Shown here: in pieces, positions 1 to 63,454 of the stretch
Numbering within the stretch: the stretch's first letter is position 1
Layout of the letters: every line of letters starts with the position of its first letter
Assembly: GCA_900088475.1 (NCBI GenBank)
Contig: FLMG01000373.1
Coordinates: forward strand, 1 to 63,454
Direction of reading: 5' to 3'
DNA from: Hyphochytrium catenoides
Lineage: Eukaryota > Protista > Hyphochytriomycota
DNA length: 63,454 nucleotides
The notes under the pieces: generated by a model
Seen by the model: only the letters and a program-made list of their open reading frames with translations
The model's database searches: none
What the model was told of the DNA's origin: nothing
Translations under genes and position numbers: made by a program

Positions 1-881
1 TGTCCGAAAGCAATGTCAAGAGTCTGTTGACGTCACTAGAAGTGTAAGCAAGAGGCCCATCTTTGCTGGCTACGAAATACGTCTGTCTTTGGCCATCGTA
101 CTGAGCATCCTGGCTCAAAGCGGGATGATACTCTTCCAAGGATCTTCTGCTTGGATGGCTTTATTCTTTGTCACAAGCTGCATCCCACAAGTAATTCTGC
201 TATTTAGAGCCCATCCGACACTGCTGTACAGCGTGGTAACGTCATTTGAGTTTGCAATGCTGATCCTGTGCTTGACAGAGTTCATCATTTGCAGCGGTAT
301 TCTAAGGAACTTCGATGGAAGGTAAGTACGCTCCAGCGTTATCTTCGTCACAATCATCCTTGATGGCCGCACGTCGCTAACAGTACGCGTCACTGGCTTC
401 CTTGTCTTTAACGTGTAGGAGCATTCTCATGTCGGGCACCTTGGCGTCGACCATTCTCTCTGCAGTTGTCATTCAGGAGGCAGTGCTCATAGCCAAAGCG
501 AAGGCGTCTCGCTGGGTTGTGTGGCAACTGTCCTCCGTATTGATCTTCCAGATATGCAGTGCGCTGTACTTTCTCACCCTCTCTCAAGATGAACGGAGCG
601 GTACAACAGGAGGAGGGGATGCAGTAGAGGTCGCTTCTGGCGGTATACTTGGCCGCTCGCCTTTGAGCTTCGCTTTGGATGCCCTCTGGAATCTCACGAT
701 CCAAACGTCTCGCAACCTTTATAGCGCAGTGAGAACACCGCACCATCTAGTCTGCGTCATGTCTGACATTCAGTATGACATCACGGTAATAGAAACTAAG
801 GCGACAGCGGTAGGAGGAGGAGCGGCGCAGCGCCACCACCATCCGAAACAGCAACCAACGCATGTAGCATACCACCAGTAG
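1..881 (+). CDS. T1: multi-TM family paralogue, 3' part only (exon 3 <1-321, exon 4 419-881)
   Basis: Frame is open from position 2. Family motifs GYE..L, RAHPTLL, SFEF, LTEF, FDGR|; phase-2 intron AG|GTAAGT(322)..TAG(418); exon 4 has IQE and RSPLSFALDAL. Confidence 0.85.
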
Positions 882-2286
882 CAGCCGTTAAGTCGCCCAC
901 AACCACTCAGGATAACAACTGCCGGAGAATCAACTCTTTCAGATCTCCGGAAACAGACTTGAGATTAGGAGTTGGCGGCAGAAGAAGAAGAGTAGTGGAC
1001 GAGGCCAGGCCAGGGAGGAGTGGGAATGCTATAATGATGAGAAGGACCTACTACTAGTTATAATAAGCAACAGGCTGGTGAGATAGTGTCATGAGCTTCT
1101 TTGCTCAAGAGTTGGATCTAAAGGACGATGGGCAGCTTGTACACTGAAGCTGCTGCTTCTTCTTGTTGGCCGCCGCGCCAGAGAGAGAGAGACAGCCCTG
1201 CCATCAGATACTGTGACCTACTCATTCAGAGCTTCTCCTGGAGTGGATCATAACAATAGCTTCCTAATCCTCACGTTAGATATACGTAATAGAGATATAT
1301 TATGCCCGCTTTATTTTCGATCAAGAACATCCTGAACAGGCGTTACAAAAAGACCGTTGTATCGTCCAGCAGGAAGTGCACTACTTGTATGGGGCGCAGT
1401 GTGCAAACCATCACCAGGCAGCGTAGCCAGAGGCTGGCGGCTGCTGTACGCCTGACACCAACAGCTCCTTCTTCCCAAGAAGATTCAGTGTGGCGGTGCC
1501 GTTCCGCCCATTGCAGGACGACATCGTCGACCCTTACGCTGCTTCTTATTATGGTGAGGCCCTGTCCTCCGTCCTCTGCTTGCCGACTCATCTCATTCAG
1601 TGGTGGCACCACTGATAACGGCGTCCGTTACGTCGCCAACCGGGCGTTCATATTGAGTGAGAGCAGCTAGGCGATAACGAGTAAGAGTAGCGAGGGCCGA
1701 TCTCAGAGTCTAGGCTGCTGCCGTACTTACTTCCTTGTTGCTCTTACAAATTTGTACCAACTCCTTCCCTGCTGTCAGCTTATAATAGAAGACAGGCCCT
1801 TACCGCAGCAGCGGGGCCATTGACCTTCCTCGTAAACGGCTTCTTCCGCCCGTCATGCTGCCAGATGTCTCTTTCATCCCTTAGCCTTCTCTTTCATTCG
1901 TCTCCTCCTCTCCTTGAGAATACTAGTTGAAGCTGCTCATCAGCCGTGTGCTTATGACACCCTACTGTGACACTCGCGACTTCGTCGGGCGGCAGTGAGT
2001 TGGTCATCAGGAACATACCCGCGTACCCTGGACGGTCCTTCTTTCGATTCACCGAGGAGGCATTCCATTGTTAGTATGGCATTGGTCAGACGCTCTGCTG
2101 TTATAAGTAGGAGAAGTTTAGGGCGTTTAAACGCATTGACGCTGATGAGAACTAGTGAAAGACGTGCTTCATGAAAAGGGTTCCTCCAGTTCGCAAGAGG
2201 AGCTCATTGTTGGCCTTGTCCGCTTGAGCAGGATTTGAGGCAATAGGCCTCTCGCCCACACAGGACACGACGCTTCCTCTCAGATA

Positions 2287-4795
2287 ATGACGCGGTATTG
2301 GACGCTAAAGCCAGTCCCAAGCTATTTCCCGGAGTACCTTCAATCCCATGAGACGGTTGGCGTGGCACTGCTTCCAGCTAGGGCGATGGACGCCTATCTT
2401 TCAATTCGTCGAAAAGCTCTCTACACGGTCTCGGTGGCTCTTGCCTTCACCTTCGGAATGGCTGCCTTTGCCTTTATAATCCTTTTTGAAGCACATCAGC
2501 CGCCTAGTCTGCGATCTACGGCTGTCGGGATCATGGCTACCGTTTGTCTGTTCTACTTTGCTGCAGCCCAAATACCGGACCTTCATTTGCAACTCTTCAA
2601 GCGCCTCTTCATGCAATGGGAAAGCTGGTTCTTCCTCGTTCAGTCAATGCCTCCAATCTTCCTCCTGGGATATTTCTTTGGCAATCGTGGTCAGATTGCT
2701 TTCGCCTCCACATGTGTGCTAGAATTTCTGGGCGGAATCATCAGCATCTTCTCGGTAGATCTAACGCCACAATTGGAAGGGTCTCAAGTGACTATTTTCA
2801 TCGTCATTAGCGGGACCACTGTCGCTGCACTGTTCTGGCTCTGGTAGGTCTCCCGCGATGCCTGAAGCTCAAATCGACTTCGACATAGCGCTAGCTCTGT
2901 CATTACCTATAACCCTCTTGTTAAGCCTCCCCTCCACCTTTCTAGATGTAGCCATAGTTGGGTCAGCAATGGGCTCTCCCCTTGCCTGCTCAGCGATGGC
3001 TTGAGAATCTAGGAATGCTGATGATTATTGAGAAGTCCCAAGTGGTGACTAATTCATCCTCATTCCCGTTATTCCGTCCTTATCAGGCTTGCGTGGATCT
3101 TATACTTTGACACCTACGAGGGACTGGAAGCGACTAGCATCACCGTGCTAAAGATACCGCTCCATCCTTGGCTGGTAGCTGCTGATTCTCTCGTGCTGAT
3201 GGCCCTGCTGTTACTGCGGCACCTCAGGAAGTACATTTCCATGGTCCGTAGCAGAAAGACTAGAGGCGGCCGGCTCCTGTTCACGATCGTGAAGTGGCCG
3301 ATCATGTTTGAGAGAAAGAATGACGAAGAAAGGAGCGATGAAAAGTCTCTGACGTTCAAGGGCGGGGGACCTTCGCTAACTCTTGCGGATTCTGGCAGCG
3401 TGGTCCTTTGGCCCCGATCTAGCGCTGGCACCAGTTCTCTATCTAAAATCAAAGTCCGGAGCCATCGAGGAAGAAGGTAACGTAAGACGACGTACTAAGA
3501 GAGTTAGCCAAAGCAGCCATGGCAAAGAGTAAGACGCCTAGGTGGATAGTGACACCTTCGTTGTTCCTCATGCTATGCGGTTATTAAGAGAGCTAGAAGA
3601 AAAAGGCATAGATCAAGCTGGTGGCTGGGCGACTTTAACGCCTCCTGCGTTCTGCTGCTGTCCGCAGGAAGCAGGAGGGAGCCGTTAAAGTCTACAGGAT
3701 CCGGCCAGTAGCACCAGAGGTTACTATCAGTGACCACAGTGACCTCTTTCAAGCATTAGATATGCTTCTCAGGAGGTGGAAGAGGCGTTTCCAGAGTATG
3801 GACGTAGGAGCTTTTCCGACGATACCGCAAGCGAAGGAGCAGAACGTAGCGGTTGAGAACCATGGCTCTGCGATTACCTCTATGCTGAACGGGAAAGAGA
3901 TTCTATTGTCAACGCTCTCCATGATGGCGCTCATCTTAGAGGTCACTACGCTAGCGTTAAATGGCTCAACCGCCGTGCTGATTCTATCCGCTCTCCTATT
4001 CTTCTCTTCCACTATATTACTTATGGGGCTTTCTCAACGACCGCTGGTTGGCAAGCTACTGAAGTCCTTCGACTTCTGTGCAATGGCGCTCGTACTGTTG
4101 GAGCTCCTTATCTTCAGTGGACATTTGCTTCAGTGGGACAGAAGGTAAGCACCATGATGTTTCTCTTTGCGCTGGAGGGTCTCGACCTGAGAAGTTTTCT
4201 CCTTCTGCTAATGTGACATAGGTTTGTCTTCATTCTATCGGTGGCTCTGGCGAGCATAACCTCCATGGTCATCCAAGATGCAACCCTCATACCAGGGCCT
4301 AGGAGACAGCAATGGATATCCCTGCACCTGTTAACTCTACTTGGCATAGAAATCGCTGGCATCTTCTACCTTGTAATGAACTCTGGCGGGCCTACTCCAG
4401 CGCCTACACCTACCACAGAGGGAGATCAGAACCATCCACTTGCAATGAGCAAGCTTGGACGTCCTCCGCTAAGCTTTGCACTTGACGCTCTCTGCACGAT
4501 GCTCATTCACACGTCAAGGTGTCTATTCTGCGCCATGTGCTACCCAAACTCTTTCGTGGCAATTCTTTCCGAAGTCGAGTACGAGACCGATTACATCGCT
4601 GCCGTTCAGAGCACAGCAGACTGCAGCGACAGCCTCACTCAAACAAGCAGCGACTTTGCTACAGCTGCTGCTGGTGAGCCACGAGGAGATGCGAAGACTA
4701 GCAGAAGGTTAAATCTAGCTTCGATGGGGAAAATGGTGGCTCCGCAACAAAATGAGAAGAATCTGCGGCCCGAAGCAACAGGTGTGGACTCTTAG
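2287..4795 (+). CDS. T2: multi-TM family paralogue, ~665 aa (exons 2287-2843, 3087-3476, 3668-4144, 4222-4795)
   Basis: Three GT-AG phase-2 introns give one continuous frame (1998 nt). Motifs RYWTLKP, PDLH..LF.QWE, YEG, PWLVAADSL, VKWP, KVYRIRP, GKE, SFDF, WDRR, QD, RPPLSFALDAL. Confidence 0.9.
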
Positions 4796-13772: not shown

Positions 13773-15087
13773 ATCTCTCTGACTGGGGTTAGGGCTTTAT
13801 TTCTCTGAGGTTGACAGGCAAGCGTACAGTCTTCAGCTAACTGCGGGCGACACCAGAGCTCAAAGCCAAGAGCCCAGGCCTGCGGTATCTCTTGATTATG
13901 AAAGGTGACGGACGAGTGGCGATACCATCGGCGCCGGCGGCAGCGGTTGAATTCTATTTGAAAGATGATGAACGAGCCCTGAACGGAGCTGCCCACACCT
14001 GGAAGAGAAGACAAGCCGGAGAGTCTTCCCTCCTTTCCAGATGCCTTTACCAGCAGGGAAGAGAGAAAGTTGCCTCTCAAGGGGAGAAGCGAGGAGGACA
14101 ACTAACTGAAGAGAAAAGGAGCGATAGGAAGGAGAGAGGGGAAAAAACCAAAGCCCCGTCGTTGCTTGGTCATTCTAGAGTCAGCAGCCCACAACGACCA
14201 TTAATGCACGCAGGCAGTGGTGGTTAAACCACCGTCACAGCAGCATTAATCGGCCCTCTCCTCCTTCCTTCCTTGCACCCATGGCTCCTCTTCAAGCAAG
14301 CGTATGAATGATGCCTCTTGTTCTTCGCTGATGATGATCATCAGCACACAGAGAAGAGGCCACGGCTCGTTCCCCTTGGTCCGTTGGCTGTTCCTGAGGC
14401 GTAGGAACTAGTAGGACCAGCCGCACCGCCACCAGAAAGAACTAGAGCAGGACCGGAACAAGAGCAGGACCGGCAGCCAGGTTCATCACCTGCAGCCAAC
14501 CTTTGTCTTGAGGGAGTACACGTGGACTGCGGGTTGGATGACGCTGATAACAGGGAGGTGACGGGGGCGGCTGCTGGGCCACGAGGTATTCTTGGCTTGG
14601 CTCGCAGATGAAGTGTCAACTTCTTCCTCGTTATCTCTCTTTCCTTTCTCTCTCCTGCCAGGCTGGCCGGTCATGCTGTGCCAGCGCCTTCTAATGCGGG
14701 GTGGGAGGAGTTTCTCTCACACTCTGTCTCCCTCCTGCCAACCTGCCCGCTCTTCTTTGGACGCCGTGCATGTCCTTTCTGTCTCTCTCTCTCTCTCTCT
14801 CTCCCAACCTGTTCCTTGTCTCTTAGACTCCGCATTATTCCGCTTTCGTTTTTGTGCCACATTCTCCTCCTTTCCACTGGTCGTCCCTCCTTCGCGGTCT
14901 CTCTCAATCAAAAACTTCTGCCCCTCTCTCTCTCTCTCTCTTTCTATTCCTAGTTCTCTTCACCCTCTCATTTCTCCCTCTCTCTCTCTCTCTCTCACAC
15001 TCAACTCTCTCTCTCTCTTTTTCTCGCTCTCTCTTCACTCTCTTCTCTCTCTCTTTTTTCTCTCTCTCTCTCTTCTCCCTCTCTCTC

Positions 15088-15091
15088 NNNN
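15088..15091. other. Assembly gap (N) within a CT-rich low-complexity tract
   Basis: nnnn in the sequence. Confidence 0.95.
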
Positions 15092-15106
15092 NTCTCTTCA
15101 CTCTCT

Positions 15107-15140
<34 letters not shown>

Positions 15141-16720
15141 CTTCACTCTCGTCTCTCTCTCTCTCTCTTTCTTCTCTCGTTTGCTTGTTGTACTGTGTCT
15201 TGCTCGGGGGGGGCCACCTGCTCCGCCTTTACTGTATTCTGGGAATTCTCAGATGGTACTGTAGCCAAAAGCTTCTTGGTTGCTAAAGTGAGGTGCGGTA
15301 GGGCGAGGTAAAAGAAATATCAGTACTTGGGAAAAGCACCTACCAGGCATTCGGAGCGCACAAAATCTCTGCATATGGTAGATAAATTGATCTTTAGGAC
15401 CCCCGAAAGGGTGGGGATTTTTACAAGAGCTAGTGCGGTACTGGTGAGAGGAGAAACCCCCAAGAACTATATCGCTGACTTAACTGGAGACAGTGCGCAC
15501 CGGACAGAAGAAAAAAGAGGTACCGCTCTTCTTTCTTCCAATCAGGTGTTTCCTCTTTGCAACACGAAGATTTCCCCGACGGATTTAACATTAAATTCGA
15601 TGCTGCTTACAATGTTAACAGGAACTTTTGGAAAGATATCATGAAATTTACATTGGAATGGGTGGGGGCTTGCCTTTATTCTTGCTTGATGTCCTGCAAC
15701 GTCTTTGCGCTCATCTCTTAGCCCCCAATAAATCATCTCTATCCGCTCTGTCTCTCAATGTACTAGCACTACTATCCGCAAAAGAGGGTCTCTCTCACAT
15801 CTACTTGGCTCTCCTTCTTATTCTGTCTGTCCGAGTGTCAGGTGAAGCTTCGTTCTTATGAAGAAGATCTTCAAAATCTTTCTCTGCCTCTGATCTCAGT
15901 TCCCATCATAAAGACAGGGAAGCGGCGGCGTGTCTCTCTTTCAACATTCGCAGCGCCGTCTTTTTTCTGGCGCACGGTCATGTGATTCCGGAGACAGAGC
16001 GCTGCGCGCTTGCTGCTCGGTGGCTGCTGTTGCTGCTTCTACTGCTCCTACTGCTCCGGCTAGCCTCCTAGTAAGCATCAACCCTTGTCGGTGTTCTAAG
16101 CGGCGGCGGCGGCAGACCACCCGGGCCTTGGATTATTGATCACTCGCTTTCCTCCCTCGTCTCGGCCATCTTCTTCTTTCGCCGCCGTTGTTCGCGCGTC
16201 TGTGCATACCGTTGCTCCATTAGACTCCAGAACCAATTCCATGGAGGAGTTCTATTGCATCCTTGCTATTACCCCCAGCAGGTCCATCGCGGAGAAGCAT
16301 TCACAAACAGCTGATGTAGAAGAAGGAGATTCGACGCTCTTCGCCCTATAAAGAAGACGGCACACTGAACCCACCAGAACATGAGGTTTTGGTCAAAAGC
16401 GCTGACAAGGAGCTAAACAAATCGGCGCGGCGGACATTAACATGAGCTTCTCAGCTCAGCCAGAGGCATCAACACAAAAAAAGTCCGGCTTGTATGATGC
16501 CTTCCTTCTTCCTATAGAGCAACCTAAAAACCTCTCTCGTTGGGGTGCTTTCATCTCGCACATTCTTCCCTATCGACCCGGCGCTAGCTGCTGCTATACC
16601 AGCGAACGTCTCATCCTGGCCTCGAATCATTGTGTCACACAGAGCTAGGTCTCGGCCTCTCCAATAAGAGGTCTATAGGAACCAAGAGACGCCGCCGGAG
16701 AAAGCTTTACCTGTAGTACT

Positions 16721-18203
16721 ATGACCAGCAAGAGCACTGCCCCTATCTCTGAAGGAGGCCACGGAAGAACATCAACGATTGCTGCTGAGGCTTTGCCGAC
16801 AAGGCCGACTGGCGAATTTTATGCGGCACTAGGTTGGCCAGAGTCAAGGGACTGGCAACAAGAAGAGCCCCTGCAGGAGGAGAGATGGGGAGCCATAAGT
16901 GACATCCCAATTCTCCAAACTTTGTTGACAGAAGCAGACCGGCAGCGAGAGAATCCTCTTCTGCGGTGCAGTGAGCAGTCCGAGGACGACAAGGGCACAT
17001 CTGCATCGAAAGAGAGTCTACATCGACACGAAGAGGATACCTCTATATTTCGAAGCAGTCAATCAATCTCTTCAAGCGCAAGGCGGAGAGAGTATCGCCC
17101 TTACTACTCTTCTACAGCTGTTCACCTCCACAACAGGCACTTACAAAACGAGCGGGCGGAGGAGGACAGTGGGGGTGACATTACAAAGGGCCAACACGTC
17201 CACCGCCAAAGACCGAAGAAGGCTAGAAAGGACAAAGAAGGGGTAGAAGGAGAAGCTGCAACGGGTCAGTGGCCTCGTCGCTCCACACTGCTACTTAGCG
17301 CTGACAGTTCTCCTTTGATGCTAGGTACTTTTCAATCAATGGCTCGCTCTGTTAGAGACAAAGAAGACGATGAAGGACTGCAAACCCCGCCGTCCTCTTC
17401 TGTTCTCGACGAGGGCGATGATCCATCGCTAGAAGAAGTTCGGCTTGATACGTTGCAATCGTTGAAAAGCATCAAGAACCAGCCAGTAAGGCGAAGACGG
17501 ATCCGATTAGAGCATCGGCTGAAGCCCCTAGAAGAAAAGCTCATGGCAGCTGAAGCGCGGCATCGAAGTTTGCAACGGCGACTGGCGCTGAATTCTTGCC
17601 CGACAGAAGAACCAGAGCGGCCTATATGCACGGACATAAGCCTTGAGAGAATTCGAACGCTTAGACTGTTCCAGCTGATGGAAGTGATGCGCAACGCTAA
17701 CGAGGGAAAGTATCATGAGGGGCTAAGCATCTATCACGAGAACTGTCTGGTCGTCCAGACCGAGATGCCCCGCATTCGAGGAAGTACTGACCACTTTTGC
17801 ATAGAGCACGAGTATAGAGGAGCCTCTGGCGTTGTGGAGCACTTGTAAGTGGTTTATGTTTGAGAAGTTCACATGCTCGCTATCAACATAACGTGTCTTC
17901 CACTATTTCAGGCTTAACTACCAGCGGACTTATGCCTATTCTCGATGGGACGATACCAAGAGGGGCATAAAGGTCTTGGATCCTCGAGCAGACAGGACTA
18001 TAGTCTATGGCGTACTGGAAGCCTCGCCGCGCGGGACTGACGAGGAGCTGATGCCAAGAGTAACCATTCCGATGGTCACAATCTTTGTCTTCTCCTCTGA
18101 GAATCGCATCTCCCACGTCCGAGCGCTGTTCAAGACTCCAGAGGCACCGGCTGCAGGCATCCAAGTTCCCTTAGCTGGTGGAATGTTTGATTTGCTGGGT
18201 TAG
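16721..18203 (+). CDS. bZIP-like coiled-coil + probable NTF2/SnoaL-like domain protein, paralogue B, ~471 aa (exons 16721-17844, 17912-18203)
   Basis: A 375-codon ORF is joined by a 67-nt phase-2 intron (TT|GTAAGT..TTCAG|G) to the 17976 ORF frame. Basic stretch KNQPVRRRRIR, then heptad leucines LEHRLKPLEEKLMAAEARHRSLQRRL; C-terminal TIFVFSSENRISHVRALF resembles an NTF2-type beta-hairpin. Confidence 0.8.
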
Positions 18204-25689: not shown

Positions 25690-27074
25690 GCTTACCTCCC
25701 TTGTACGGCGCAGCAGCTCAGACGTTTAATTTTCGCCTTGAGAATACGTTCCACATTCACAAAATGAACAGGGAAAACTCTGCGTCTACTCCCAGGGGCG
25801 TAGTAAACCTGCTGGTGCATGGGAAGGCCCCTCCTCCTGTAAGCTGCGTGAAGTGAGAGGGCAAGCACTTAATGACCTTGTTCTCTTCACCAGAGTTCAA
25901 ACACCGTTACCTTCCAAGGACCAATCTCATCAGTACAACAAACAAGTGGCTCGTTAAGCAGAGAAAGGAGTGGGAGCCCCCGATAGTAAACCGCAGTCCT
26001 TTCTTATCAGTGACCATGTGAGTAAGGGCAAGGAAAGGACCATGGAACTATCACATCAACACCCAGCGGGAAAGAAGAAAGGGAGAAGAAGACGCAGCAG
26101 AGGTGAGTCCATGGTCGCAATTTGAGACAACAATCTTCTGAAGAAGGTAGACTCTTAAGAGGCTCCGAGCATGCGCTTCACCCCTTGTATGCCACCAGCA
26201 GCACAGCCAGGGCCGGCCTATAAATAATAAGACGGAAAGCCGTTCTTTCTTTGTCTGCTAATGCGACGGTTGGTGGCTGGCCGAAGTAGGTGGGAGGAAA
26301 GGAGGAAAACAGGGAAGGAAGGGCGATTGGCCTGTTACGAGCCCGAAGTGCACTGGGTTGTTTGATTGATGATGTGTTGCTGTAACGGACATGTGAAGAG
26401 GCCGTTAACGGCTTTATTGGACCACTTTGGTCGTTACAAGTCCACGCCCCTCTCTCAGTTGCCCCTTGCCCCACCTTCTATGCGGACCATCGTTACTTTC
26501 GGTCAGACCATGCGGGATCTGCGATAATGAATGACAAGCTGTATCTGATTCTGACCTTTTAGTCCATAATATTTCTAATAACGCTGGGTTACGCAAACTT
26601 TTTGGTCGCATGATTATCTTTGGACAAGCGATCTTTTGTACCAGAGACCGCTCCGTATCTTTCCCATCACCGTGACCACCACCACCATCGTATCACTCAC
26701 ACTCTCAGAAGAAAGGCCATCATCCTCTATCCTCAACCTGATGTCCACACCTTTTATTAGAAGCAGGGCAACAGCCACAGACCCACATCTCTCGTCTTCG
26801 TCGTCATGATGGGTCAGCGTGCATGGTAAGGACAGCCAAGGGTGGTGGTAGTCTCAAAGACTTCCAGGAGCAAGTAGGAGGAGGAGAGTTTAGTCTGCAG
26901 GCCCTCTTTCACCACTTGCACCGGCTGTCTTCTATGAATAAAGAAGTTAGTGATTTTATACAAACAATAAAGGAATCGATAGCATGATGAGGAGGTGCAC
27001 GACGAAAGCTCTCGACCACTTCAGAAGTAGCGCAGGAAACACCAGAAAGCATCCGTGACTCATCGCTAGGTAGA

Positions 27075-29298: not shown

Positions 29299-30090
29299 TA
29301 AAGTCTTTTTACTAGACCGTAGGACGACGACCACTTGTCGCTCCACCAGGCCAGCCGGTCAACTTATGGTGAATGCCTTATTAGAGGCAATTTTGCTAGC
29401 AATCTCAAAAAGAAACGGAAGAAAGGACTTGCGTCGATTGCAACCCTTTATTGTCCTCCACGTTCTCCAGGTAGGCGGAGCTGGTGGAGCCTCTGGAGCG
29501 GTGACGACAGTGCAAAGGTTATCTTGATTATTGACGTCGACGCGTGCCTCTGCAACCGCAGGCTCAGCAAACCTTCTTCTTGCATTTGCTCTTCTAGAGT
29601 ATATCTCTAACTTCTTTTGGGGCGAAGCAACGATCGAGCTGTACTTTCTATCAGAGAGATTGGTTGCCGGCAGCTTCTTGACCGTCGGCTCCATCATTCG
29701 TGGTGTCCACGCGACGGAGCCTCAGCCTCTGCCTGCAGAGACATGAGGAGAGTTCATTGCAAAGAAGAGCTTCTCTCGTTTGCAGCAGCTTTTTTTGAAC
29801 TCTTGATGTCGGCAGCCTGCGTTCCGATCCTTGATAAATGACTCAAATAAATCTGGATACCCAAATCAGTGCCTCACTCATCCTGAATATCTGGCTCGTC
29901 GCCACTCATGAGAGGGGGGACCAGCCAGGAAAGGATTTTTTTACTTTTGCTGTGAATCTTTCTTTCTGAGCAGCAGCGGCGCTTGGTTGCCTGCAGGTGG
30001 TGGCGCGGCTTTTGGACATCATCATCTCAAGCCACTTGTGTCCTACTCTTTTGAAGGGCTACGGTCTAGTCGACAGAGTCTCCAGCCACA

Positions 30091-32879: not shown

Positions 32880-35711
32880 AAGAGAGATTGGGACTACCAT
32901 CATGCTGATGAGGGTGTTCGGAGGCGTAAGCAATGCGGACGGAAGCCATCCAGTTATCTTCTAAAGCGACTGAGGTGATGGGCACCGCGCTGCTAGAAGC
33001 GATGATTAAGGTAGCGGAACTGCTTTAAGATTGTAAGGAGAAGAAACAGGAGCGAACGGTCTCAGATGGGAGAAGATTACCTTGTTGCTTGCCTGTTAGT
33101 TGACACTTGCAACCACAAAGAGGAGGTGATAGAATAGACCAAAGATCCGTTCAAGCGTCGCCGTAAGAAGAGCTTCTGCTGAGTAAGTACTTCAGCCAGA
33201 GAGACTTTGGAGACGATATGCAGGCAGAGGACTACCTTGAGGAGCTATGGTGTCGAAATTCAATGAAGGTCAAGAGGTGAATGAAGAGGTGATATTAAGT
33301 CTCTCTTAGCAGCTTCACTCCTATGAAGAAAGCACTTTGACCCTTATGCTTGCGCCGTTGTCTTGGAGGTTTCCGGACCGAGGTCCATCCAGATGCAACT
33401 TCCTCATACCGCTGGCGGTGGTGGTAGAAGTGAGCATATTGATATTAAGGTGCTCCCCTGTCTGCTGGCTGCTTCTTGTTCCTTCATGATATTTAAGACA
33501 GAGTCACCCCTCTACCTCCTACTACTAGGTGTAGGGACTACTACGGTCATCATCGCCCTTGGCATCCCGGGTCTGCTGCCTGCTACTCCTGCTGCTACCT
33601 CTTATAATGTCGCCTCCGGGGTCACCGGGGCGAGCAGCGGCGGTAGGAGAAGAAGAGTATATAAGTGATGGCACACCTGGCGAAGGACAGTATCATTATT
33701 AAAGATAGCCGCAGGAAGGAAGACAGACGGAAAGCGGGAACGGTGGGGTCTCAGAGGGCGAGGATGGGAGGAGGAACGATGCACAAGGCTTGTGTCATCC
33801 TCTCAGCTTAAGACTCATCACATGCCCTTTCTTCCTCCTCCTTCCTCTTCCTTCTCTGTCTTCTTTCTTTACTCTCAGTGCTTTCACGCTTATCTTCTCT
33901 CTATCTCTAATGTGCCAACCTTTGATTCTGACCCATCCCTCTCTGCCCTGAGCCCTCAGCTCCATGGGTCTCCGAAGATGTTCTGATGGGTTCCTTTCCA
34001 CTGCTCAAAACATAAAGACAGCGGCAACAGCGGATAGTGGAGACACAGCTGCCTAGACCTCTGCACTGCTGCAGAACAGTCAATCGCCCGTCCGCTCGCC
34101 CATAGCCGGGTTGGACCCCTGCTAGAAATAGACAATCAATACTTATGATTTTATCCCGTTAGAAGCGACAATACCGTCTGCCAAAGTGGGAAGGATCATG
34201 CACTCTACCGCTATTCCTTCGCGAGCTAGTGAGTTAGGACACGACTATTATAGGGCAAGTGCTCCCTTCCACGTGATCCAGCAGGCGGGAAGGAAAACTC
34301 ACAGGCTAGTAGTGTCAAGCTTCACCTTGATCTCCAGCTAGCCAGAGGCTTGTACATCTTGTTGGTTGGTGCTCTTGTCACCATTCGGATGAGCAGAAGA
34401 ATGCCTCAGTCAGGAACTGAGATGAATTATGATCTTCAGGCGATTATTATAGCCAAACACTAGCGCCTGTCTCTTCATGGCATTCTCCCTTCGGTCTGGG
34501 CTTTATCCGGATGGCGCGCTCTCTTAGTTCAGCCTTGGCCATTTGTGTCAAGCGCCTTGCGCGTCTTCGTTTCTATGCATTTCTTCAAGCCACTCTTCTC
34601 TTCCCACTCCTCTATTTCCTATCTCCCTTTCTTCTCCTCTTCTTTTTTTTTATTCTATCGTTTCCACTTCTTCTTTGCTTTTGCTTCTTCTTCATGACGC
34701 ACACTCTCTCTCCTCCTTTATTCTTTCTCTCGCACCTTCTTTTCTCCTGTCACTATCATATTCTCTGTTCCCTGCTTCTAGACTGGCATACATTCTCTAC
34801 TTCTATCCTTATAAGTGATGGAGCACACTGCCATCATAATCTACTGGGGTTCCGATCCGCTGCCGGCTCGTGGCCGTTGACTCTATTATTGTCGTCGTGG
34901 CGCTGCTTCACTGTCCTCTCTTGCAGCTACTAAGATGCTCTTAGGAGCGAACCTTGTGCTCCTTCCCTCTGAAGACATGCTGGTGTCTTATTCCTTCTCC
35001 CTTAGTCTCCACGTGGACGCGCTTCTGCTATTGACTTTGATGCTCCAAATCTGACTGAAAAGTCTGTTGTGTCCATCGCCAGGCAGCTGCACCAGCTCGT
35101 AGTGTTGGCTCTCTCCTTCAGATAGACGACAAATTCGCCAGTTTGGCGCCTCCTTCTTCTCTCGTCGGTTTCCCCGCTGCTGCTTCTCTCTCTTCACCAA
35201 GCAAGAAGGAAGATAAGACCCAAACTGCAGGGAAGAAGAGGGCTGCTGCTCAAGACAGACCACACTTGAGAAAAGATTGGAGTTAGAAGAGAATGGTGCC
35301 CAGCCCGCTAAGCGCACGGACCGTCCTTCTCAGTAGCCTCCCTTTCCTTCTCAGTAGCACTTGATTCTTGGTCATTCTCTTTCTTAGTCTCCTCCTCCCT
35401 CGACGCTGCCCCCACGCAGGGTTCCTGCTTCTTCTTCTGTATAATGAGTATATACCTTTCTCTAAAACCGCTGCCCTTTCATCACCAGGGAACATCTGCA
35501 TGAGCAGGATAAGAGCATGGGACCTCTCCCCTTGTGGCAGTATTCTGCCTCTTATTATGCAGAGGAAAGCTTGGGGCAGCAGCGAACGTCATTCCGTTCT
35601 CAGTAGCTTGTCGCTTGCTTTTTCTTTCTTCTTTTTCACCTCTTTGCTAGTGCCAAGCCCAATATTCTCTTTCTCTCTCTCCCTCTTTCCTCCCACCCTA
35701 AGACTAAGCGG

Positions 35712-47730: not shown

Positions 47731-50663
47731 ATGATGGAAGGACCACGGGGGAGTTTGCTGATCAGGGAGGAACAGACGGGATCTACCAGTGCTTCATCTT
47801 CCCCTCCTTCGCCGTCTCCCCCTGCTGTTGATCTTCACGGCTCTCCTGCTAGCACCACAGCTTGTCGTCCCTCTTCTGACCCTGCTGCGCCTCATAATGT
47901 CCTAGAGCCTGGTCGGTACTGGGTCATCAAGCCTCAGCCTGACTACATCCCAGATATTTTGGACTCCAGAATCACTCTGTCGCGCGTCTTGTTTCCCTCA
48001 GCGATGCAGAAGTTTTACTATCGACTTCGCCGTAACGTCCTCTATCTCATCCTCTGCTGTGGCGTGACTATGCTTACCACCGCCATCGGGTTCCTCTATC
48101 TCTTAGAAGTTAGAAGTAAGCATGGGGATGAACCCTCTTCGTCGGTAGGATACGCCGTGACCGTCGTGTCCGTAGTCTACGGCTCCACGCTGATCCCAGA
48201 AATCCATGCAGAGCTGCTTAAAGCGCTGTGTCGTCAGTTTGAGCTCGGTTTCTATATCCTGCAGACGTTGCCTGCGCTTGGTGTCTGTGCGTTCCACTTC
48301 TCTTTCACTGGACAGCAGTCCAGAGCTTCTGCCACGGTTCTCGGCTTGCAGTTGATTGTCCTGGTCCCAATGATCATTGACACCTTAGTCCTCGGAGGCC
48401 TCTCGAAGTCCATGACGCGCTATACATTTGTCGGTATCTCGCTCTGCGTGGCAATGCTCTCCCGGTCAGTGCCTTCCTAGGAGTCCTCTCATCACAGGCT
48501 TATCTCTTCTACCTTATCTCTCCTTCTTCTTCTTGGAGAAGATGTCCTGTCAAAACTCCTGTTATCTTTGTGATACCCTATCCTTGCGGTTTTCCCCCCT
48601 TCTCCAGCTCTTCAAGGTCTCCCTTCCGTAAGATCGTACTAAATCCTTGTTGGCCATATACAGCGTCTTAACCTTGTCAACATTGACTTGGCCTTCTTCG
48701 TCCTTCTCTCCTTAGAATAGTCTGGATATTCTATTTCCAGCCTTACGAGGGGATAGAAGCGATGGAGATTGTTATATCTCAGGTTCCCGTCCGGCCATGG
48801 CTCATCGCGGCAGACTCTTTGGTGGTCGTCGTGCTTCTCTGTCTGCAGCAGCTGAATAAGCTTCTGGCCAAGCTGAGGCGCCCCAAGAGCCTGAAAGGGA
48901 CCAGTGACTTTCTAAACATCAAATGCCCGCTAGTTATAGAGTCTGTCTCTTCATTGCTGCCCACAGCCTCTTCACTCTTCAGTGCAATCGATGGTGCAGA
49001 AAGCTTGGCAAAAAAGGAGGAGACAGCAACAAGCACTTCGTCACCCGTGAAGAGAGAAGCTAGCCAGAGGAAGGTGACCGACCAAGGGACAATGCAACCA
49101 GCTAAGGCGGAGAATGTGCCCTCAGCCGCTGCTGACAGGAGGGAGGAGAAGCAGCAGAGGGCTCTGGACCTTAGCCATGCTAGGGAAGGTGCTCACCTTA
49201 TCGATACGCTGAAGAAGGCGCAAGACGGTCCCAGGTACTAACTGCAAGCTATCCGACAGAAAGTGCAAGAGGAGGTCAGGAAAGAAAAGGAGAGAAAAGC
49301 AGTGAGAGAAGATAGCAGACAGAATCAATGAACGACGCAGTGTCTTCTTAGCTCTTAGATATGCCTAGTACGTCTGATTGGCTTACTGGTTCGTCTCCCC
49401 GACGAGCAGGAAGAAAACAGTGCGAGTGTACAAGCTACGAGCTGTGCAGAAGCCCATCCTCATCGATTCACACGAGGATTGCCTTCATCTTGGGCTCAAG
49501 AAGCTTCACGCCTTTCTCAGTGGGGAGGACAACAGGAAAGGCGGCGTAAGGAAGCTGAGAATCCGGCCATCACGGCCTTTTCTCTTAGCAGATGCGGCTC
49601 ATGAGCAAAGGCGAGAAGAAGAGGAGAAGAAAAAGAAGAGAGCTCACAATGTGCTTGTAGGCAAAGAGCCTCTTCTCTCTCTGGCACCACTGACCGGGAT
49701 CCTGCTGCAGATGCTAATGATAGAGCTCGGCGTCTCTCCCACTTCCGAAGTTGTGCTCTGTGCCTTCACCTGCTTGACAAACACGCTTCTGTTATGTCGC
49801 TGTCACCCGATGCTCGTCAGGAAACTGCTGCGGTCTTTCGACTTTGCCCTTATTTTCTTCTCCATCCTGCAGTTCTTTGTCTTCTCCTGCCTGCTCTTCC
49901 GCTGGGACGAAAGGTAAAACAAGCTTTCACTCCTTCTTTCTCTTTGCGCTGGCCCATAGGTGGGGTGGGATAGAGTTCTCCATGAAAGTTCTTTCTACTG
50001 ATATAGCTCTTTGAGGTCTAGGCTACTATCTTCCTACTTTTACTTCTAACATCGTCTCTTATGATCTCATTCTGTCTCTTTCTCCTTTCTCTCTCTCTTT
50101 CTTTCTTTTCTCTCTCTTTGGTCTGTCATCGGCCTCTCCGTCGTATCTATAAACTCACGCCTGTCTCACATTCTTCTTCTTCTCTCCCGCATTTACGTGC
50201 TCTCTTCCATGACCTGCTGTGCACAACCACCAGGACGCTCGTAGTTGGCTCTACCTGTGTCACCGTCGTCAGTTCTCTCATCATGCAGGACGCGATCATG
50301 ATGACTCCTCAGAAGCGCCGCCAATGGCTAATCCCTCACTTCTCAATCTTACTCTTTGGTGAAGTCTGCTGTGCAGTTTACTTAGTCTTCCGCCCGTTGG
50401 AGGACGTCAGCAGCGATCTACTATTAGGAGAAGCAGCTAAATCTTTCTTCACTCGGTCACCTCTCTCTATGGCTTTAGACGGTCTTGCCACCATCGTAGT
50501 CTACACTGTCCGGAGCCTCTCTAGCATTGCTTATAACGCGGACATGCTTGTCGCCGGCCTCTCACGCATAGAGTGTCAGGTTATCAACCTAACGGCAGAG
50601 GAGCTCATGGCTGAACTAGAAAACCGCAAAGCAGCAAAAAAGAAGGACCTTGGGGCTAGTTGA
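47731..50663 (+). CDS. T8: multi-TM family paralogue, ~728 aa (exons 47731-48464, 48716-49234, 49410-49913, 50234-50663)
   Basis: Spliced frame of 2187 nt; closely similar to T6 throughout (e.g. IECQVINLTAEELMAELENRKAAKKKD is identical). Confidence 0.9.
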
Positions 50664-54900: not shown

Positions 54901-55800
54901 CGGCCGAGAGTGAGGACAGAAGAGAAAGGAAATAGAGGAGGAGCGGCAAATGGAAGAGTGGATCCAAGAGATAAAATAGAAGGGGAGAAAAGAGCAAGCC
55001 CTTGACAGACATATACAGCCGGCAGTAAGAAAAGAGAGAGAATCCTGGTCCACTGATAGTGAAGAGCGGTGAGAAGGTAACAGGATCCGAGCCGCGAGAG
55101 TTACTGCCTTGATGTGAGGAGAACGCGTTGTTGCTGGGGCAATAACACTACCGAAAGGAACAAGAGCTACTCTCATTTGCTGATTGAGGAGAGAAGAAAC
55201 AACCGAGAAGAGCAGACTGCAGGACCACTGCATTTGCGCAGGATGATGCACCTTCTTCTTCTGAGACCCATGGAGTTGAGGGCTCTAGGTAGGGGAGAGA
55301 TAGAGGGATGGGCGCGCTCAAGGATTGGCACAGTAGAGGTAGAGAGAATAATAAGAAGACAAGCATCTACTGAGAGGAGGAGGAGACTGAGAGGGCTGTG
55401 AGGATGAAAGAGAAGAGAAAGGCGGGGAGAAGGAATGAGGAAAGAGGAGAGAGGCTCTGATGACGCGTGGGAATGGAAATAAAAGACGAGTCTTGTGCGT
55501 CGCTCCTTCAGCAGCAGAAGGAAACGAGAGGGGCAGAAGAGGCTAGCGAAAATAGAGTAGCGAAGTGATTGCTCTAGTGGCAGCGCCACCGAGAGAGAGA
55601 CGAGAGACAGAGAGAAAGAAGGATTGGGGAGAGCTAACATGGAAGAAGGAAGACGTGGAACAATATGCCAAAGAGATGCGAAACGACTGAGGCTTGATGA
55701 TGTGCGAGAGGTGGAGCTGAGGGGGAGATTGGGATGAGCACGACGCCTAGGGAGTGATTGAGTGAGCGAGACGATAGAGAGAGAGAGAGAGAGAGAGAGA

Positions 55801-55832
55801 NNNNNNNNNNNNNNNNNNNNNNNNNNNNNNNN
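55801..55832. other. Assembly gap (N run) inside a (GA)n tract
   Basis: N run flanked by GA repeats. Confidence 0.95.
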
Positions 55833-55890
55833 GAGAGAGAGAGAGAGAGGAATGAGAAATAAGAAAAGACTCTTTTGATAATCTATAAGT

Positions 55891-57920: not shown

Positions 57921-60900
57921 ATGTCACCCGTTAGCCCAACGGCCGACGAAGAGAAGAGAACGGAGCAACCTTTGTCAGCCCCATCTTCTCTTCTCTCTTG
58001 CTCTTCTTCGTCGGCGAGACCGTCTTCACCTTCTGCGGCGCCTAGATTCTGGACGATCCGGCCCTCTCCTGGCTACTATGGCGCAGAGGCCGTGGTCCGC
58101 TCTGACCGGATGGTGGCTAATCTTATGCCGCGGTGTATAGAGAGGCCCTACCTCCGCGTGCTGAGAAAATCTATGGTTTACCTCTTTCTATGGGTCACTG
58201 TGCATGAGCTGCTCGGGCTCGTAGGCTTTTTCTACCTCGTGGAAGACCGGAGCAAGGAGGGAGAGACCGTATCGATGGCTCTAGGATACACTGCGGCCGT
58301 GTGCATCACCATATATATCTGTTGCCTATCGCTAGAGGTACACACAGAGCTTCTAACCGCTCTGTTTCGTCAGTGGGAGGTATGGTTCTACTTCTTGCAG
58401 AGTCTTCCTCCTATCATTCTCTACGGCTATCACTTCGGACTGATCGGACAGTACGTGCGAGCTCTGGCGTTCATTGTAGGCTTCGTCGTTATCACGCTCA
58501 TCCCTATTCTTCTTGACTCCCTGCCGCACTTTGGCCTTGCTCCCGCTACCTTGGGGCTTGAGGTGTTTGGCGTGGCTGCGTGCACGCTTGTGCTGCTGAG
58601 GTAGGCGTCGTTTCTCTTCCCTCGCCTGGTCTCTTCTTGGTCTCTTTCTAGTGATCATACTTCTTCTACTGGTGCTTCTCCGCTTCTTCCCTAGATTGCT
58701 TTTCCTTATCACTTGCCTATAGGCTCATCATGGCCGCTGCTGCTGTCTCTATCACTTGTGCTTTTGTCTCTTAGGATCAACATCAAGAAGCTTTACTACT
58801 TGATCTCTGCCAGGTCTTATCTCTCTCCTGTTTGCTCCTCGCTTCTTCGCTCTTCTTCTCACCATTCTTGTGTCCTTTATACTTCTCTCTTTCTATATCT
58901 CTTCACTGCAGAATGTCCCTGATCCTCTATCTCTATCCTTACGATGGCATGGAGAGAACGGAGTTCAAGCTCTACACTGTCCCAGTTCGTCCCTGGTTGA
59001 TCGCTGGTGACTGTCTGGTTGTGCTGTCACTGCTACACTTGCAGCAGTTTGCCAAGAACTTGGAGAAGCTGAGCGCAAGAGGAAGAATGTCAAAAGGAAC
59101 AGCATCATTTGTTAACATTAAGTGGCCTCTTGTCATGGAGGAGGCGGCGGTAGATGCAGGTGAGGTGAGGCAGAACAGAAGACGGAGTTCTATGGAAGAG
59201 AAGAAGAACAGGATCGCGAAAAAGAAGGTGAAGAAGCTAAACGAGGTGGAAAGGGCTCTCTCTGCCGGGCCGCTTCTCTCTCTTTCTCAACCTAGCAGTG
59301 CTGGAGCTATCGCGGTGAAGGTTGAGAGAGACTCAAAGCTTGCTAGGCCCCCAAACGTGGAAGAAGACAAAGCAGCAGTCTCAGAGGAGAAAGAGAAAGC
59401 ACTCAGGTAGGTTGCCACTGATCGTTTATGAGAGTTATGTCCCAGGAAGCAGGTCTATGACGAGAAAGGGAGCAAGAGAGAGCGCGATAGCAAAAGAGAG
59501 AGAGAGAGAGAGAGAGACAGCAGAGACACAAAGAGAGAAAGAGAGACAGAGACAGCGAGAGGGAGAAGTGTGCGCGTTGGGGCGCAGGGAACATGTGAAA
59601 GAAGTCGGATAAATGGAAGCAAGAAAGACAGACAGAAGTAGATGGAGGAAGAGAGGAGAAAAAGTATCCCAAAAGATGCAAAGACCTCAAGGCTGCTTGC
59701 TACCCTTCCTTCCTCTCTCTCCTTCTCAGCAGCCCGGGCAGGAAAAGAGGCGGCGGACGGCGAATATACCGCATCCTTCCCTCAAAAGCGAGAGACAGAA
59801 AGATTGACGGGCACCAAGACACTTTCTCTCTCCTGCTACGGCTGCTGGGAAAGCATAAAGTTTTTCTTCCCATTATCTCTTTCTTCCTAGGAGAGAGAAC
59901 GCGACCTGTCTCTTCTCCTCCTTTTATGGTCTCTCCGGCAGCAACAACAGAAAGGACGGCTTCTCCTTATCCGAGGAAAGAGAGAAGCCCGATCCGCATC
60001 CCTTTCTTATGGAGACGCTTACGCGGTCAAGAGCACATGCTCTCTCTCTTTGCCTTTCTAGCCACGGCCATACAGGCACTACTGACTGGCTATGGCGCAC
60101 CAAGGGGTTTCTCTTGGCTCTTCTTTCTCTCTTGTCTTTCTGTCAACCTCCTTCTCCTCCTCCGATCTCAACCGTCTCTCCTCTTTCAGCTGTGGCAGTC
60201 CTTCGATTTCCTTCTTCTCGCCTTCTCGCTCTTGGAGTTCTTGGTCATGGGAATTTTGATGTTAGACAATGATGAGAGGTAAGGAGAAACGGAGCAATGA
60301 TCTCTTTCCGTCACTCGCTCTCTCTCTTTCTCTCCTTCGCGCTCTCCCTTTCTCTCTCTCCCTCTCTCTTTCTGTCTCTTTCTCTGTGTCTCCGTCTGTG
60401 TTTCTCTCTCTTTTCCTATCTATCTCCTCACGCTCTCCTCTCTGTCTATGTCTGTCTCTCTTTCTTCCCCTCTTTTACACTCTCTCTCTTCTCCCTTTGT
60501 CCTTGTGGTCGACTATGTTACCGCATGTTCCCTCACATATTTTAACCTATGCGGACAAAGAGCAACCACTGCAGTCTTCTTCTCTCTCTTCTTGATCCGT
60601 TAACCCTTCTCTGATTACCGCTCCGTCTCCTTACTACAGGTGTCTCCCGTTTGTCTCTCTCTTCGTCACAATGGCTACGTCTCTCATGGTGCAGGACACA
60701 CTTCTTTTCCGTCCTCAAGAGAGAAGGCTCTACTATATTCCGCAGATGTCTCTTCTCTTCCTTGCACAAGTCTGCTGTGGCCTCTACTTCGCGTCTCTCC
60801 AACAACAGACAGAGAATCTCTCGTCGCTCATCGGCCCTTTAGCTAACATTGCAGCGTTCCGACGCACTCCGATCAGCATAGCGCTGGACTCTCTCTTCAC

Positions 60901-61108
60901 TATTATCATCCATACACTGAGAAGCCTACTCACCATCGCCAGCAGACCGGAGAGAATGGTGTGGATCCAGAGCCGCGTGGTCTATAGGGTCGAGTATGTG
61001 CCATCATCCACAGACAGAAAATCAAAGAGAGAGAAACAGACAAAGATCATTGATATATCAGAACGAGCGCGAGGGCAACCAAGAGCAGACGCAAGTGGCG
61101 AAAGATGA
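57921..61108 (+). CDS. T10: multi-TM family paralogue, ~730 aa (exons 57921-58600, 58912-59406, 59730-60278, 60640-61108)
   Basis: Spliced frame of 2193 nt. Motifs RFWTIRP, QWEVWFYFLQ, PWLIAGDCLVV, IKWPL, RIYRILP, GQE, RSQP, SFDF, NDER, QD, RTPISIALDSL. Confidence 0.9.
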
Positions 61109-61877
61109 CGATCAGCAGGCAGAAGAGGGGGATGGACTAGTTCAACTCTAAAAGGCCAACTCTATTCTTTCCATGGTCATCCAAGACGAAGACGCTTGCA
61201 GATGCAAGAAAAGACTGGGACAAAGCATTCATAGATTTATACAGGCAGGAAAGGGAAAGACAGAGGTGACCATGGTTACTCTCTAACATGCCATGTGTGG
61301 GGCCTGTCGGTGGGCCCCCTGGCCATCCAATAGATTGCTGCCCTTGCTGACAGACAAACGACCTCCCACCATAATAGTAGAAGTAAGAACAGAAGAAGAC
61401 ATAAGATGTAGTGACAAGGGCTACTGGATGAAGAAAGAGAACGCTCGGACGAAAGACCCCAGACGACGCGGCTCGGGGGATAGATAACAAAGGAACATCT
61501 CTTCCAACTGAATTATGAGGAACAAGATACATCGTCCTGCTCCCTGCGGTCCCTAATCTTCTGTGTCTAGCCGATCTCTTTCTCTATCTCTTTCTCTGCT
61601 TGTTCAACTCTCCCTCTCTCAGCCCACAGAAAACCCGTAATTTATCTTTTTCTCGATCCTTCTCAATCTCCACCTGCTCATCCAGTCTACACTTTCGGCC
61701 TACCCTTTCGTTCTTCTCTAGTTGGTTCCTTCTCTTTTTCTTCTATTTCTCTCCCTCTCATCCCCAGTGTCCCATCTACTTCCTTGGCTCTCCCCAGTAT
61801 TATCGCTTCCCACCCATGTTGTCCTGATGAGGTTTTCCATTTCTCACACGAACGGCAAGAGCTGCTATTTATTTATT

Positions 61878-63454
61878 TTAGCGATGGCTTGAAGAGGAAG
61901 GTGCCATGGAAGACTCTCGTCTCTCTTCCGCGATGTACTCTACTCTATACGCCGCCTTACTCTGTGCTGCGACCAGGAGCTCAGGGCTGCTGTAGAGAGA
62001 GACACAGCTCCTCAATGTGTGCAGCATGACGGTGAAGAGAGAATCAAGCGCCATACTTAGAGGAGAACGGCCAAACATCGCTAGCTTCGCTAGAGGCCCA
62101 AGCAGTCCCGACAGATCCCGACTTGGAAGGGCAGCCACGTAAAAGCCTATAGACATCTCTGCCGCCAGAAGCATGGACATGTGTGGGAAGAGCCAGCTCT
62201 TTCTCCGGAAGGGAGAGAGAACCACCGTGTCTTGCACAATAAGAGAGATAGTGATTGTGGCGACCAAGGAAGTAATGGGCATGCACCTTTGGTCAAAGTC
62301 CACGACAACGCAGCCCATTAAGCCAAACTCCACCAGAGAGAAGAAGCTTAGGACGAGCTCGAAAGAGCGTACCAGCCTTCCCAGGAGCGTTGGATGGCTC
62401 CGGAGGAGGAGTAAGAGGTTCGTACACATCGAGAGGGTGAAGAAGAGGAAGCAGAAAGCTGGTGGGAAACTTAGTGCTGCCATAAGCACCTGTAGAGCGA
62501 TGCCTAGCAGGGAGAGAGAGGACAGCCATGACTCTCTTCCTCGAAGTCTTTGCCATAAGGGGTGAAGGGCAATTTCGTGGTCTTCGTACATGTCCAACGG
62601 AACTGTGGAGAAAAACCTTGACCCAATGCTTGTTGTCGGTTGTCTCCTCCTAGAGCGTGGACGGCTGACGAAGTGTCGGCGATAGAGTTTCAATAGGACA
62701 AGGAAGACGTCGTAGTAGCTGTCAACCTCCAGGGGGCCACCCATGGGGAAGATGCGATAGTACCGGCGCTGCTGTATGTTTCTATAGAGGAGCGGGAGGA
62801 GAGACGTTAGCAAGCGAAGCTAAGGTTGACTGGGCAGACAGAGCAGCAATAGAGGGAATCAGGCGTTGAGATGAGCGTCAGCATAACATGATAAGCAGGC
62901 CAAGTACCCTGAGGAGGAAAGAGGACGGGCACCAGCGGCGCAAGGAGAGAGAGCTATAGCGACAATACGACAAACAACATACAAAGGAAGGGTATCGAAG
63001 TATAAGGGAAGAACATTCGTTATGCGGCTCCAGCAGGCAGAAGTATTCGGAGGTGGCCTACCTGTTGTCAGTGGTGGTCCCAGGACCAGTCTCTCTCCCG
63101 GTGGTTGACCCTGTGTCTCTACGGCTGCTCCCGTCCTCAGCTTTCACGTCGCTGCCTCTCTCTTTAGCAGAAAAATAATGCGTTCTTGACACTGTGCTTT
63201 CAGAGTGCGGAGTGTGCGCCGTATGCTCGCTGTGAGACGTAGATTGTTGCTCTGCGTGGAGGGTGATCGTGGGGCCATTGAATGGCGCCGCCTTCACTTT
63301 CTGTGTCCTAAATTTCTTTCCGTCCATCCTCGTGCTGGGCTCTAGCACGAGCGGCCACTTGATGTTGATAAAGTAAGACGTCCCATCCACCATGCGCTGC
63401 CGCAGCCGTCGGATGTTCTTCACGAACTGTTGGAAGTGCAAAAAAGAGAGTACT
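61878..63454 (-). CDS. T11: multi-TM family paralogue, 3' part (exon 2 >63454-63062; fused exon 3+4 62781-61878)
   Basis: HFQQF..GTSYFINIKWPL, phase-2 intron 63061-62782, then an uninterrupted RYYRIFP..GRE..RSHP..SFE..DFDQRCMP..QD..RSPLSMALDSL. Confidence 0.88.

Follow-up and report, generated by a model that had tools for sequence, protein, structure and literature searches.

A tandem array of genes for an unnamed membrane-protein family is carried by a 63,454-base stretch of the genome of the hyphochytrid Hyphochytrium catenoides (contig FLMG01000373.1), referred to here as the window. Our analysis confirms that the family, which has no name, is real and intact and carries an internal duplication, and that its Phytophthora relatives are present only as uncharacterised database proteins. 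Our leading, tentative reading is that the protein is an ion channel or an ion-coupled transporter. If true, this would be the founding description of an orphan membrane-protein superfamily, with gene models, an architecture, signature motifs and a taxonomic frame.

Nine complete paralogues in a two-strand array

A preliminary description of the window had proposed a dense array of at least 11 paralogues on both strands, with one exon plan, a set of shared motifs and continuation past both window edges. When its motifs were located in stop-free frames, they fell into 11 loci on both strands, with the frames in ordered groups of four. The same number was reached by tblastn with exon pieces of three copies as queries, which recovered exons 1 to 4 in that order at 11 loci. 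We also made a hidden Markov model (HMM) of each of the four exon alignments and ran these models against all six reading frames of the window at a cut-off of E<0.01. They matched exon 1 nine times, exon 2 ten times together with one weak fragment, and exons 3 and 4 eleven times each; nothing else passed the cut-off. The window holds nine complete paralogues, two that are cut by its edges and one decayed exon-2 relic (Table 1), and the proposed count was therefore upheld, with the relic in addition. As had been proposed, the array continues past both edges, where the left copy keeps exons 3 and 4 only (2-878) and the right copy a partial exon 2 besides exons 3 and 4 (61881-63453). Its density held in part: 11 loci are present, but other genes, including two cytochrome P450 genes at ~27.0-33.0 kb, interrupt the array, and an 11-kb stretch (7.5-18.7 kb) is without any family member.

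Exon ends were first read from the junctions of three copies, and phase-2 GT...AG pairs were then enumerated beside the conserved blocks of nine copies. The spliced models that the preliminary description had called for could be built for all nine complete copies. Each gives an intact open reading frame (ORF) of about 635-850 aa that begins with an ATG in exon 1 and has one terminal stop and no internal stops. The complete genes have four exons and three introns at fixed positions, and all 27 introns are GT-AG, in phase 2 and 68-521 nt long. The common exon plan is thus seen in the nine complete copies, but not in copy 11 at the right edge, which is without intron 3 because its exons 3 and 4 are fused in one ORF (61881-62819; exon-3 HMM at residues 16-176, exon-4 HMM at 179-304).

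In every copy, introns 1 and 3 each fall at an identical alignment column, within a codon for Trp, Leu, Cys or Arg. The predicted junction 1 is confirmed by P0004, an 800-aa environmental relative that contains exons 1-3 without introns in a single ORF and crosses this junction colinear with the nine models and with no indel. The predicted junction 3 is confirmed by copy 11, whose unbroken reading (...DFDQ-R-CMPITSL...) is exactly the splice predicted for the other copies. Intron 2 lies in a variable linker; its donors are good and some acceptors are weak (G23, G47), so that its exact boundaries are provisional. At the junction-3 site, the relative locus L001 keeps an intron, which in locus L003 appears as a 66-nt in-frame insert. 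The absence of intron 3 from copy 11 looks like a recent loss inside the array, as the other copies, L001 and L003 keep the intron.

The copies of this array, at least 11 genes and a relic, are old, diverged and intact. Pairwise identity among the complete copies is 27-41%, with the exception of G35 and G47 at 82%. For this pair, nonsynonymous divergence (dN) is 0.105 and synonymous divergence (dS) 0.336, giving a dN/dS of 0.31, and their introns are just 51-76% identical, with many gaps. Pseudogenes are therefore unlikely, as old duplicates all keep open frames and the youngest pair is under purifying selection. That the loci are decaying pseudogenes, chance ORFs or an assembly artefact is an explanation to which we give hardly any weight and which is largely refuted. 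One true relic, two scaffold gaps and the lack of a listed RNA run could be cited for it, but nine spliced ORFs are free of internal stops, introns of the G35/G47 pair diverge faster than its exons, and intron positions are conserved across species. At 27-41% identity, moreover, the copies cannot be collapsed or duplicated reads, and 59-72% of one gene's sampled words are present in independent DNA runs. Both gaps (N runs at 15088-15092 and 55801-55832) lie between genes, inside (GA)n/(CT)n microsatellites, with repeat sequence on either side of each gap. As no paralogue crosses either gap, no reading frame depends on them. The only thing that hangs on the second is the contiguity of G58 and copy 11 with the other nine copies.

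Two six-helix modules joined by a cytosolic linker

The family had been described as having about 12 transmembrane segments, and this is what we find. A family-averaged hydropathy profile has 12 hydrophobic segments, with a central linker between the first six and the last six, and the structural model of a relative, introduced below, has the same 6+6 arrangement. The linker is 150-250 residues long, charged, of low complexity and fast-evolving. Equivalent motifs are present in the two halves. Each half begins with a strand motif, RYWxxKPxPxY..LD in the first and RKVYxxRPVQ.P..ID in the second, followed at the junction of helices 2 and 3 by E.H..LL..L..QFE and HP.LL.KL..SFDF, respectively. The last helix of each module has a conserved Asp within PWLIAADSLVV in the first half and SPLSLALDAL.T in the second. 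The R(Y/F)W motif, listed earlier as shared, is so elsewhere but not in G18, which carries SFSW where the other copies have RYW. Glu, Asp and Gln are conserved inside the predicted helices of both modules.

Each protein consists of two homologous six-helix modules joined by the long linker. This internal duplication is supported by three observations: 1) both window halves match the C-terminal half of an oomycete family in profile comparisons; 2) the two halves of that oomycete family match each other at E 0.01; and 3) the relative's model is built of two repeats.

By the positive-inside rule, the N-terminus, linker and C-terminus would be cytosolic, and the YEGxExTE loop between helices 5 and 6 would face outward. 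Variation is greatest in the N- and C-terminal tails and in the central linker; identity is 40% in helix columns and 31% elsewhere. The sole well-defined outer loop, the acidic YEGxExTE, is conserved. This distribution bears on the suggestion that the array is a diversified receptor or chemosensory repertoire, in which each paralogue has its own ligand and signals via the cytosolic linker. A tandem array of old paralogues at 27-41% identity, all kept intact, would suit such a repertoire, as would the tandem duplication of the Phytophthora family judged from neighbouring locus tags, and the long variable linker could be a signalling platform. The variation sits, however, in the cytosolic tails and linker and not in the outer loops or helices, and no seven-transmembrane (7TM) fold, match resembling insect odorant or gustatory receptors (OR/GR) or recognisable signalling domain was found among the Pfam and structural matches. 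Twelve helices in two symmetric modules are, in addition, an architecture typical of transport proteins. As variability falls on the cytosolic side and the principal outer loop has been conserved, nothing positive speaks for the receptor idea, and we consider it improbable.

Relatives in oomycetes

We searched the exon-1 profile against 1.84 billion representative proteins and obtained five matches. Four of these, three exon-sized ORFs and one 800-aa ORF, come from four different public sequencing runs and form unnamed single-member clusters. P0004 as a protein-search query matched itself only, and an exon-2 pattern scan of JGI metagenome contigs gave no further relative. The window family is rare in public data.

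The fifth match, the Nothophytophthora hypothetical protein RLN97787.1 (P0005), led to an oomycete family of ~600-aa proteins. Its members (for example RLN97787.1, PITG_17780 and PHYSODRAFT_516429) occur in many Phytophthora species and also in Nothophytophthora and Pythium; they are annotated as hypothetical or transmembrane and have no Pfam domain. Their frequently neighbouring locus tags suggest that the oomycete genes, too, are in tandem copies. In RLN97787.1 itself, two complete 6+6 units are joined head to tail, with 24 predicted helices and near-identical C-terminal parts; the fusion may be genuine, or two tandem genes may have been merged in the gene model.

Comparison of profiles with hhalign linked the two families with a probability of 89-93% for one module. 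The exon-1 profile alone matched the oomycete family at 93% probability, as did the window N-terminal half with the oomycete C-terminal half (E 3e-7, 192 columns). The window C-terminal half matched the same oomycete half at E 2e-4 over 228 columns, and exon 4 matched the oomycete C-terminal region at E 0.003. A full-length colinear alignment of 599 columns was weaker (E 6e-4, probability 28%), and exon 2 found no match in the oomycete family by profile comparison. These alignments place the window family as a distant sister of the Pfam-less oomycete family. An oomycete resemblance had been proposed in the preliminary description; it proved real but distant, the sole named relative being this Phytophthora/Nothophytophthora family with its YEFWF and WNFDV motifs.

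Both families have two six-helix modules with a central linker and occur in tandem copies. Their motifs correspond in position: the module-start strand reads LYELQLA..P.VD and QQLRLA....VD in the oomycete proteins and RYWxxKP..LD and RKVYxxRP..ID in the window; the helix 2/3 motif reads YEFWF and RDLLRLLxWNFDVLFSTFQ as against QFExWF and SFDF; and the C-terminal motif reads P.QLLFI.R.VEY as against P..LV..LS.VEY. In contrast, direct identity is only ~13-17%, three introns interrupt the window genes but each oomycete gene reads as one ORF, and the PWLIAAD and RSPLSxALD helices of the window have no close oomycete counterpart except WLLxLDALTPS.

With a hyphochytrid host on one side and oomycetes on the other, the family would be common to both Pseudofungi branches. 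It is possible, though doubtful, that the window family and its oomycete relatives make up an undescribed superfamily confined to Pseudofungi (with a possible giant-virus copy), that its pseudo-symmetric 6+6 fold is absent from solved structures, and that it represents a new class of channels or transporters in tandem arrays. Literature searches by locus tags found no paper on the oomycete relatives, and the family goes unmentioned in the Hyphochytrium genome paper. The relatives are uncharacterised proteins in every Phytophthora genome sampled here.

A candidate channel or transporter

A channel or transporter function fits best because of the conserved intrahelical Glu, Asp and Gln, the two-module symmetry, the acidic outer loop and an otopetrin-like arrangement of helices. 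The conserved intramembrane residues of both modules would line a conducting or transport path, at the mouth of which the acidic YEGxExTE loop would sit, and the variable cytosolic linker would act as a regulatory element. Weak signals resembling voltage-gated channels recur across several searches and are counted for this function as well.

The conserved intramembrane His, Glu and Asp (E.H, HP and D) are also typical of membrane-embedded enzymes, and the array adjoins two P450 genes. A polytopic membrane enzyme, or a lipid-handling or structural membrane protein with no transport pathway, could thus be envisaged. Pfam scans, however, matched no enzyme family at any threshold, and the P450 neighbourhood is at a single locus only. 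As the conserved polar residues are mirrored in both modules, which suits a pseudo-symmetric pathway over a single active site, we see little likelihood in an enzymatic, lipid-handling or structural role.

For structural comparison, the Phytophthora relative P0010 was folded with AlphaFold2 from 21 sequences (predicted local distance difference test, pLDDT, 74.9; predicted template-modelling score, pTM, 0.73), and its C-terminal module was folded alone (pLDDT 71.3, pTM 0.69). The P0010 model has two repeats with the same order of secondary structure. Each opens with N-terminal strands and continues with six long helices, the fifth and sixth of which have a hairpin between them; another strand follows helix 6. 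In Foldseek searches of the PDB with this model and its C-terminal half, the best template-modelling (TM) score, 0.35, was to zebrafish Otop1, and CNGA1, TPC2, Slo1 and SthK recurred with low TM-scores. In the AlphaFold DB, matches at E<1e-3 comprised about a dozen clusters without an informative name, which include single-module and double-module proteins. ESM Atlas searches gave chance-level scores of 0.72-0.75 by features (Ion_trans, TMEM117, TMEM39) and TM-scores of at most 0.3 by shape. There is no confident structural relative among the models and profiles compared; the two weak leads, to otopetrins and to voltage-sensor-like proteins, are mutually inconsistent.

One cluster in the AlphaFold DB, A0A6C0C1K0 (357 aa), matches one module of the fold at E 8e-6 to 1e-5 with a TM-score of 0.43-0.53. 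Its accession series would place its origin in a viral metagenome. The match to the model makes it a candidate for a single-module copy carried by a giant virus.

The otopetrin architecture, two six-helix bundles in one chain, appears to be the nearest three-dimensional analogue, and membership is not claimed. Otopetrins (Otop1, Otop3, CeOtop8; PF03189) share with the window family 12 helices arranged as two homologous six-helix domains in one chain and conserved polar and acidic residues within helices. In contrast, no PF03189 match was found at E<=10 with window exons, P0004 or oomycete relatives, and there was no PDB sequence match. Otopetrins are not known to have the cytosolic strands and the helix 5/6 hairpin predicted in the P0010 model, and are mainly an animal family.

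The other lead would make the protein a highly diverged voltage-gated-like channel, with two six-transmembrane repeats as in two-pore channels and a dimer forming a four-domain pore. Two-pore channels (PF00520) share the two repeats and the cytosolic linker. The single PDB sequence match, of the exon-3 profile to a Nav voltage-sensor chimera (E 0.36), aligns helix 7 with S1, helix 8 with S2, and HP.LL.KL..SFDF plus helix 9 with the S2-S3 linker and S3 (LFDFFVVTLSLVEL), so that both have an S2 to S3-like motif in which the third helix starts with F-[DE]. Foldseek matches of local structure to CNG, Slo1, SthK and TPC2 are likewise shared; CNGA1 was the top match of the half model (probability 0.82, E 0.1), with CNG, Slo1, SthK and TRPV4 recurring, and CNGA1 and TPC2 were among the matches of the full model. 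One structure-matching AlphaFold DB cluster is automatically named 'Ion transport domain-containing protein', and language-model neighbours of P0010 bear Ion_trans, SK_channel and Ion_trans_2. The score of these neighbours, 0.72, is nevertheless at chance level by the tool's own note, and no member matches PF00520 even at E 10. A charged S4 is missing, as helices 4 and 10 have at most one basic residue in place of a basic ladder, and the helix 5/6 loop, of ~20 residues, is a predicted beta-hairpin and not a pore helix with a filter. Three-dimensional similarity to a voltage-sensor bundle plus pore helices was tested and not found. A voltage-gated-like channel is thus unlikely.

Several results weigh against a channel or transporter of any kind or against the details proposed for it. 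Exon pieces matched no Pfam model, including those of the major facilitator superfamily (MFS), Ion_trans, Otopetrin, GPCR and ABC, and no recurrent match emerged at E up to 1-10 when exon pieces, P0004 and 21 oomycete relatives were scanned one by one or as alignments. Four profiles searched against PDB sequences had no match at E<0.1, and neither these nor the Pfam searches found a function-bearing homologue. The structural model is of a distant oomycete relative and not of a window protein, and in Foldseek comparisons with the PDB neither it nor its C-terminal half matched a solved structure at E<0.1, with TM-scores of 0.35 or less. Direct profile comparison of the window N- and C-terminal halves was colinear and not significant (E 0.2-0.34). 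Finally, no RNA runs are listed for the window sequence, and expression and the intron-2 boundaries are predicted. The absence of Pfam and PDB sequence matches agrees, on the other hand, with the earlier statement that the family is unannotated and not recognisable as MFS, GPCR, ABC or a known channel.

Two further candidates were rejected. The MFS shares the 6+6 helix count and central cytosolic loop with the window family, but there was no MFS match in Pfam, the alignment lacks the MFS signature motifs, and the MFS fold gave TM-scores of 0.12-0.17 with a root-mean-square deviation above 15 A. A comparison with the folds of insect OR/GR-like 7TM channels and plant DUF3537 had been suggested in the preliminary description; neither these nor any other 7TM fold was among the structural matches. 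The window proteins have 12 helices and no Pfam match, and no such PDB, AlphaFold DB or atlas entry was among the matches listed.

If the protein is a channel or transporter, a lineage-restricted oomycete member would matter in practice as a membrane target specific to the pathogens, and the possibility of a new channel fold is of basic interest. Unusual ion channels, the kalium channelrhodopsins, are already known from the host lineage, whose orphan membrane families are for this reason worth electrical testing.

Gene neighbourhood and other features of the window

The positions of the paralogues, the relic and the second assembly gap are given in Table 1.

Table 1. Members of the membrane-protein family and an assembly gap in the window
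Feature	Span	Strand	Segments	Evidence
Paralogue 1, cut by left edge	2..881	+	exon 3 2-322; exon 4 in frame 381-878	exon-3 HMM 4.9e-20; exon-4 HMM 4.9e-31; tblastn
G02, complete, 665 aa	2287..4795	+	exons 2287-2843, 3087-3476, 3668-4144, 4222-4795	intact spliced ORF; GT-AG phase-2 introns; four exon HMMs
G05, complete, 707 aa	5031..7455	-	exons 7455-6842, 6723-6337, 6233-5694, 5613-5031	spliced ORF; introns; exon HMMs
G18, complete, 708 aa	18729..21745	-	exons 21745-21087, 20565-20110, 20041-19508, 19206-18729	spliced ORF; introns; exon HMMs
G23, complete, 635 aa	23426..25689	-	exons 25689-25127, 24992-24573, 24435-23935, 23849-23426	spliced ORF; introns; exon HMMs
Decayed exon-2 relic (pseudogene fragment)	34780..34941	+		tblastn E 2e-4; exon-2 HMM 7e-5; two in-frame stops in translation
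G35, complete, 728 aa	35712..38664	-	exons 38664-37940, 37672-37148, 36944-36441, 36144-35712	spliced ORF; introns; exon HMMs
G42, complete, 643 aa	42680..44930	+	exons 42680-43248, 43324-43713, 43869-44366, 44456-44930	spliced ORF; introns; exon HMMs
G47, complete, 729 aa	47731..50663	+	exons 47731-48464, 48716-49234, 49407-49913, 50234-50663	spliced ORF; introns; exon HMMs
G51, complete, 849 aa	51137..54649	-	exons 54649-53775, 53421-52747, 52373-51822, 51584-51137	spliced ORF; introns; exon HMMs
Assembly gap in intergenic (GA)n microsatellite	55801..55832	.		(GA)n on both sides; between G51 start (54649, minus) and G58 start (57921)
G58, complete, 730 aa	57921..61108	+	exons 57921-58600, 58912-59406, 59730-60278, 60640-61108	spliced ORF; introns; exon HMMs
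Paralogue 11, cut by right edge	61878..63454	-	partial exon 2 63061-63453; exons 3 and 4 61881-62819	exons 3 and 4 in one ORF

By eye, the exon-2 relic is closest to exon 2 of G51, and no other exon is nearby. Two tandem multi-exon cytochrome P450 genes lie inside the array on the plus strand (26991-29300 and 30548-32880), with Pfam p450 matches of 5e-6 to 8e-9. As a word-indexed protein search matched no protein to the first P450 exon at E<=1e-5, these genes are very divergent. Scans with Rfam and for tRNA genes gave no match in the window. The family-free 11-kb stretch contains an open frame of 389 codons at 16679-17845 on the plus strand (375 aa from its ATG), for which Pfam gave no match. 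The window is ~50% G+C, and its intergenic stretches often hold long (CT)n/(GA)n microsatellites (e.g. 15000-15180 and 55780-55850), which translate as runs of SLSL or ERER.

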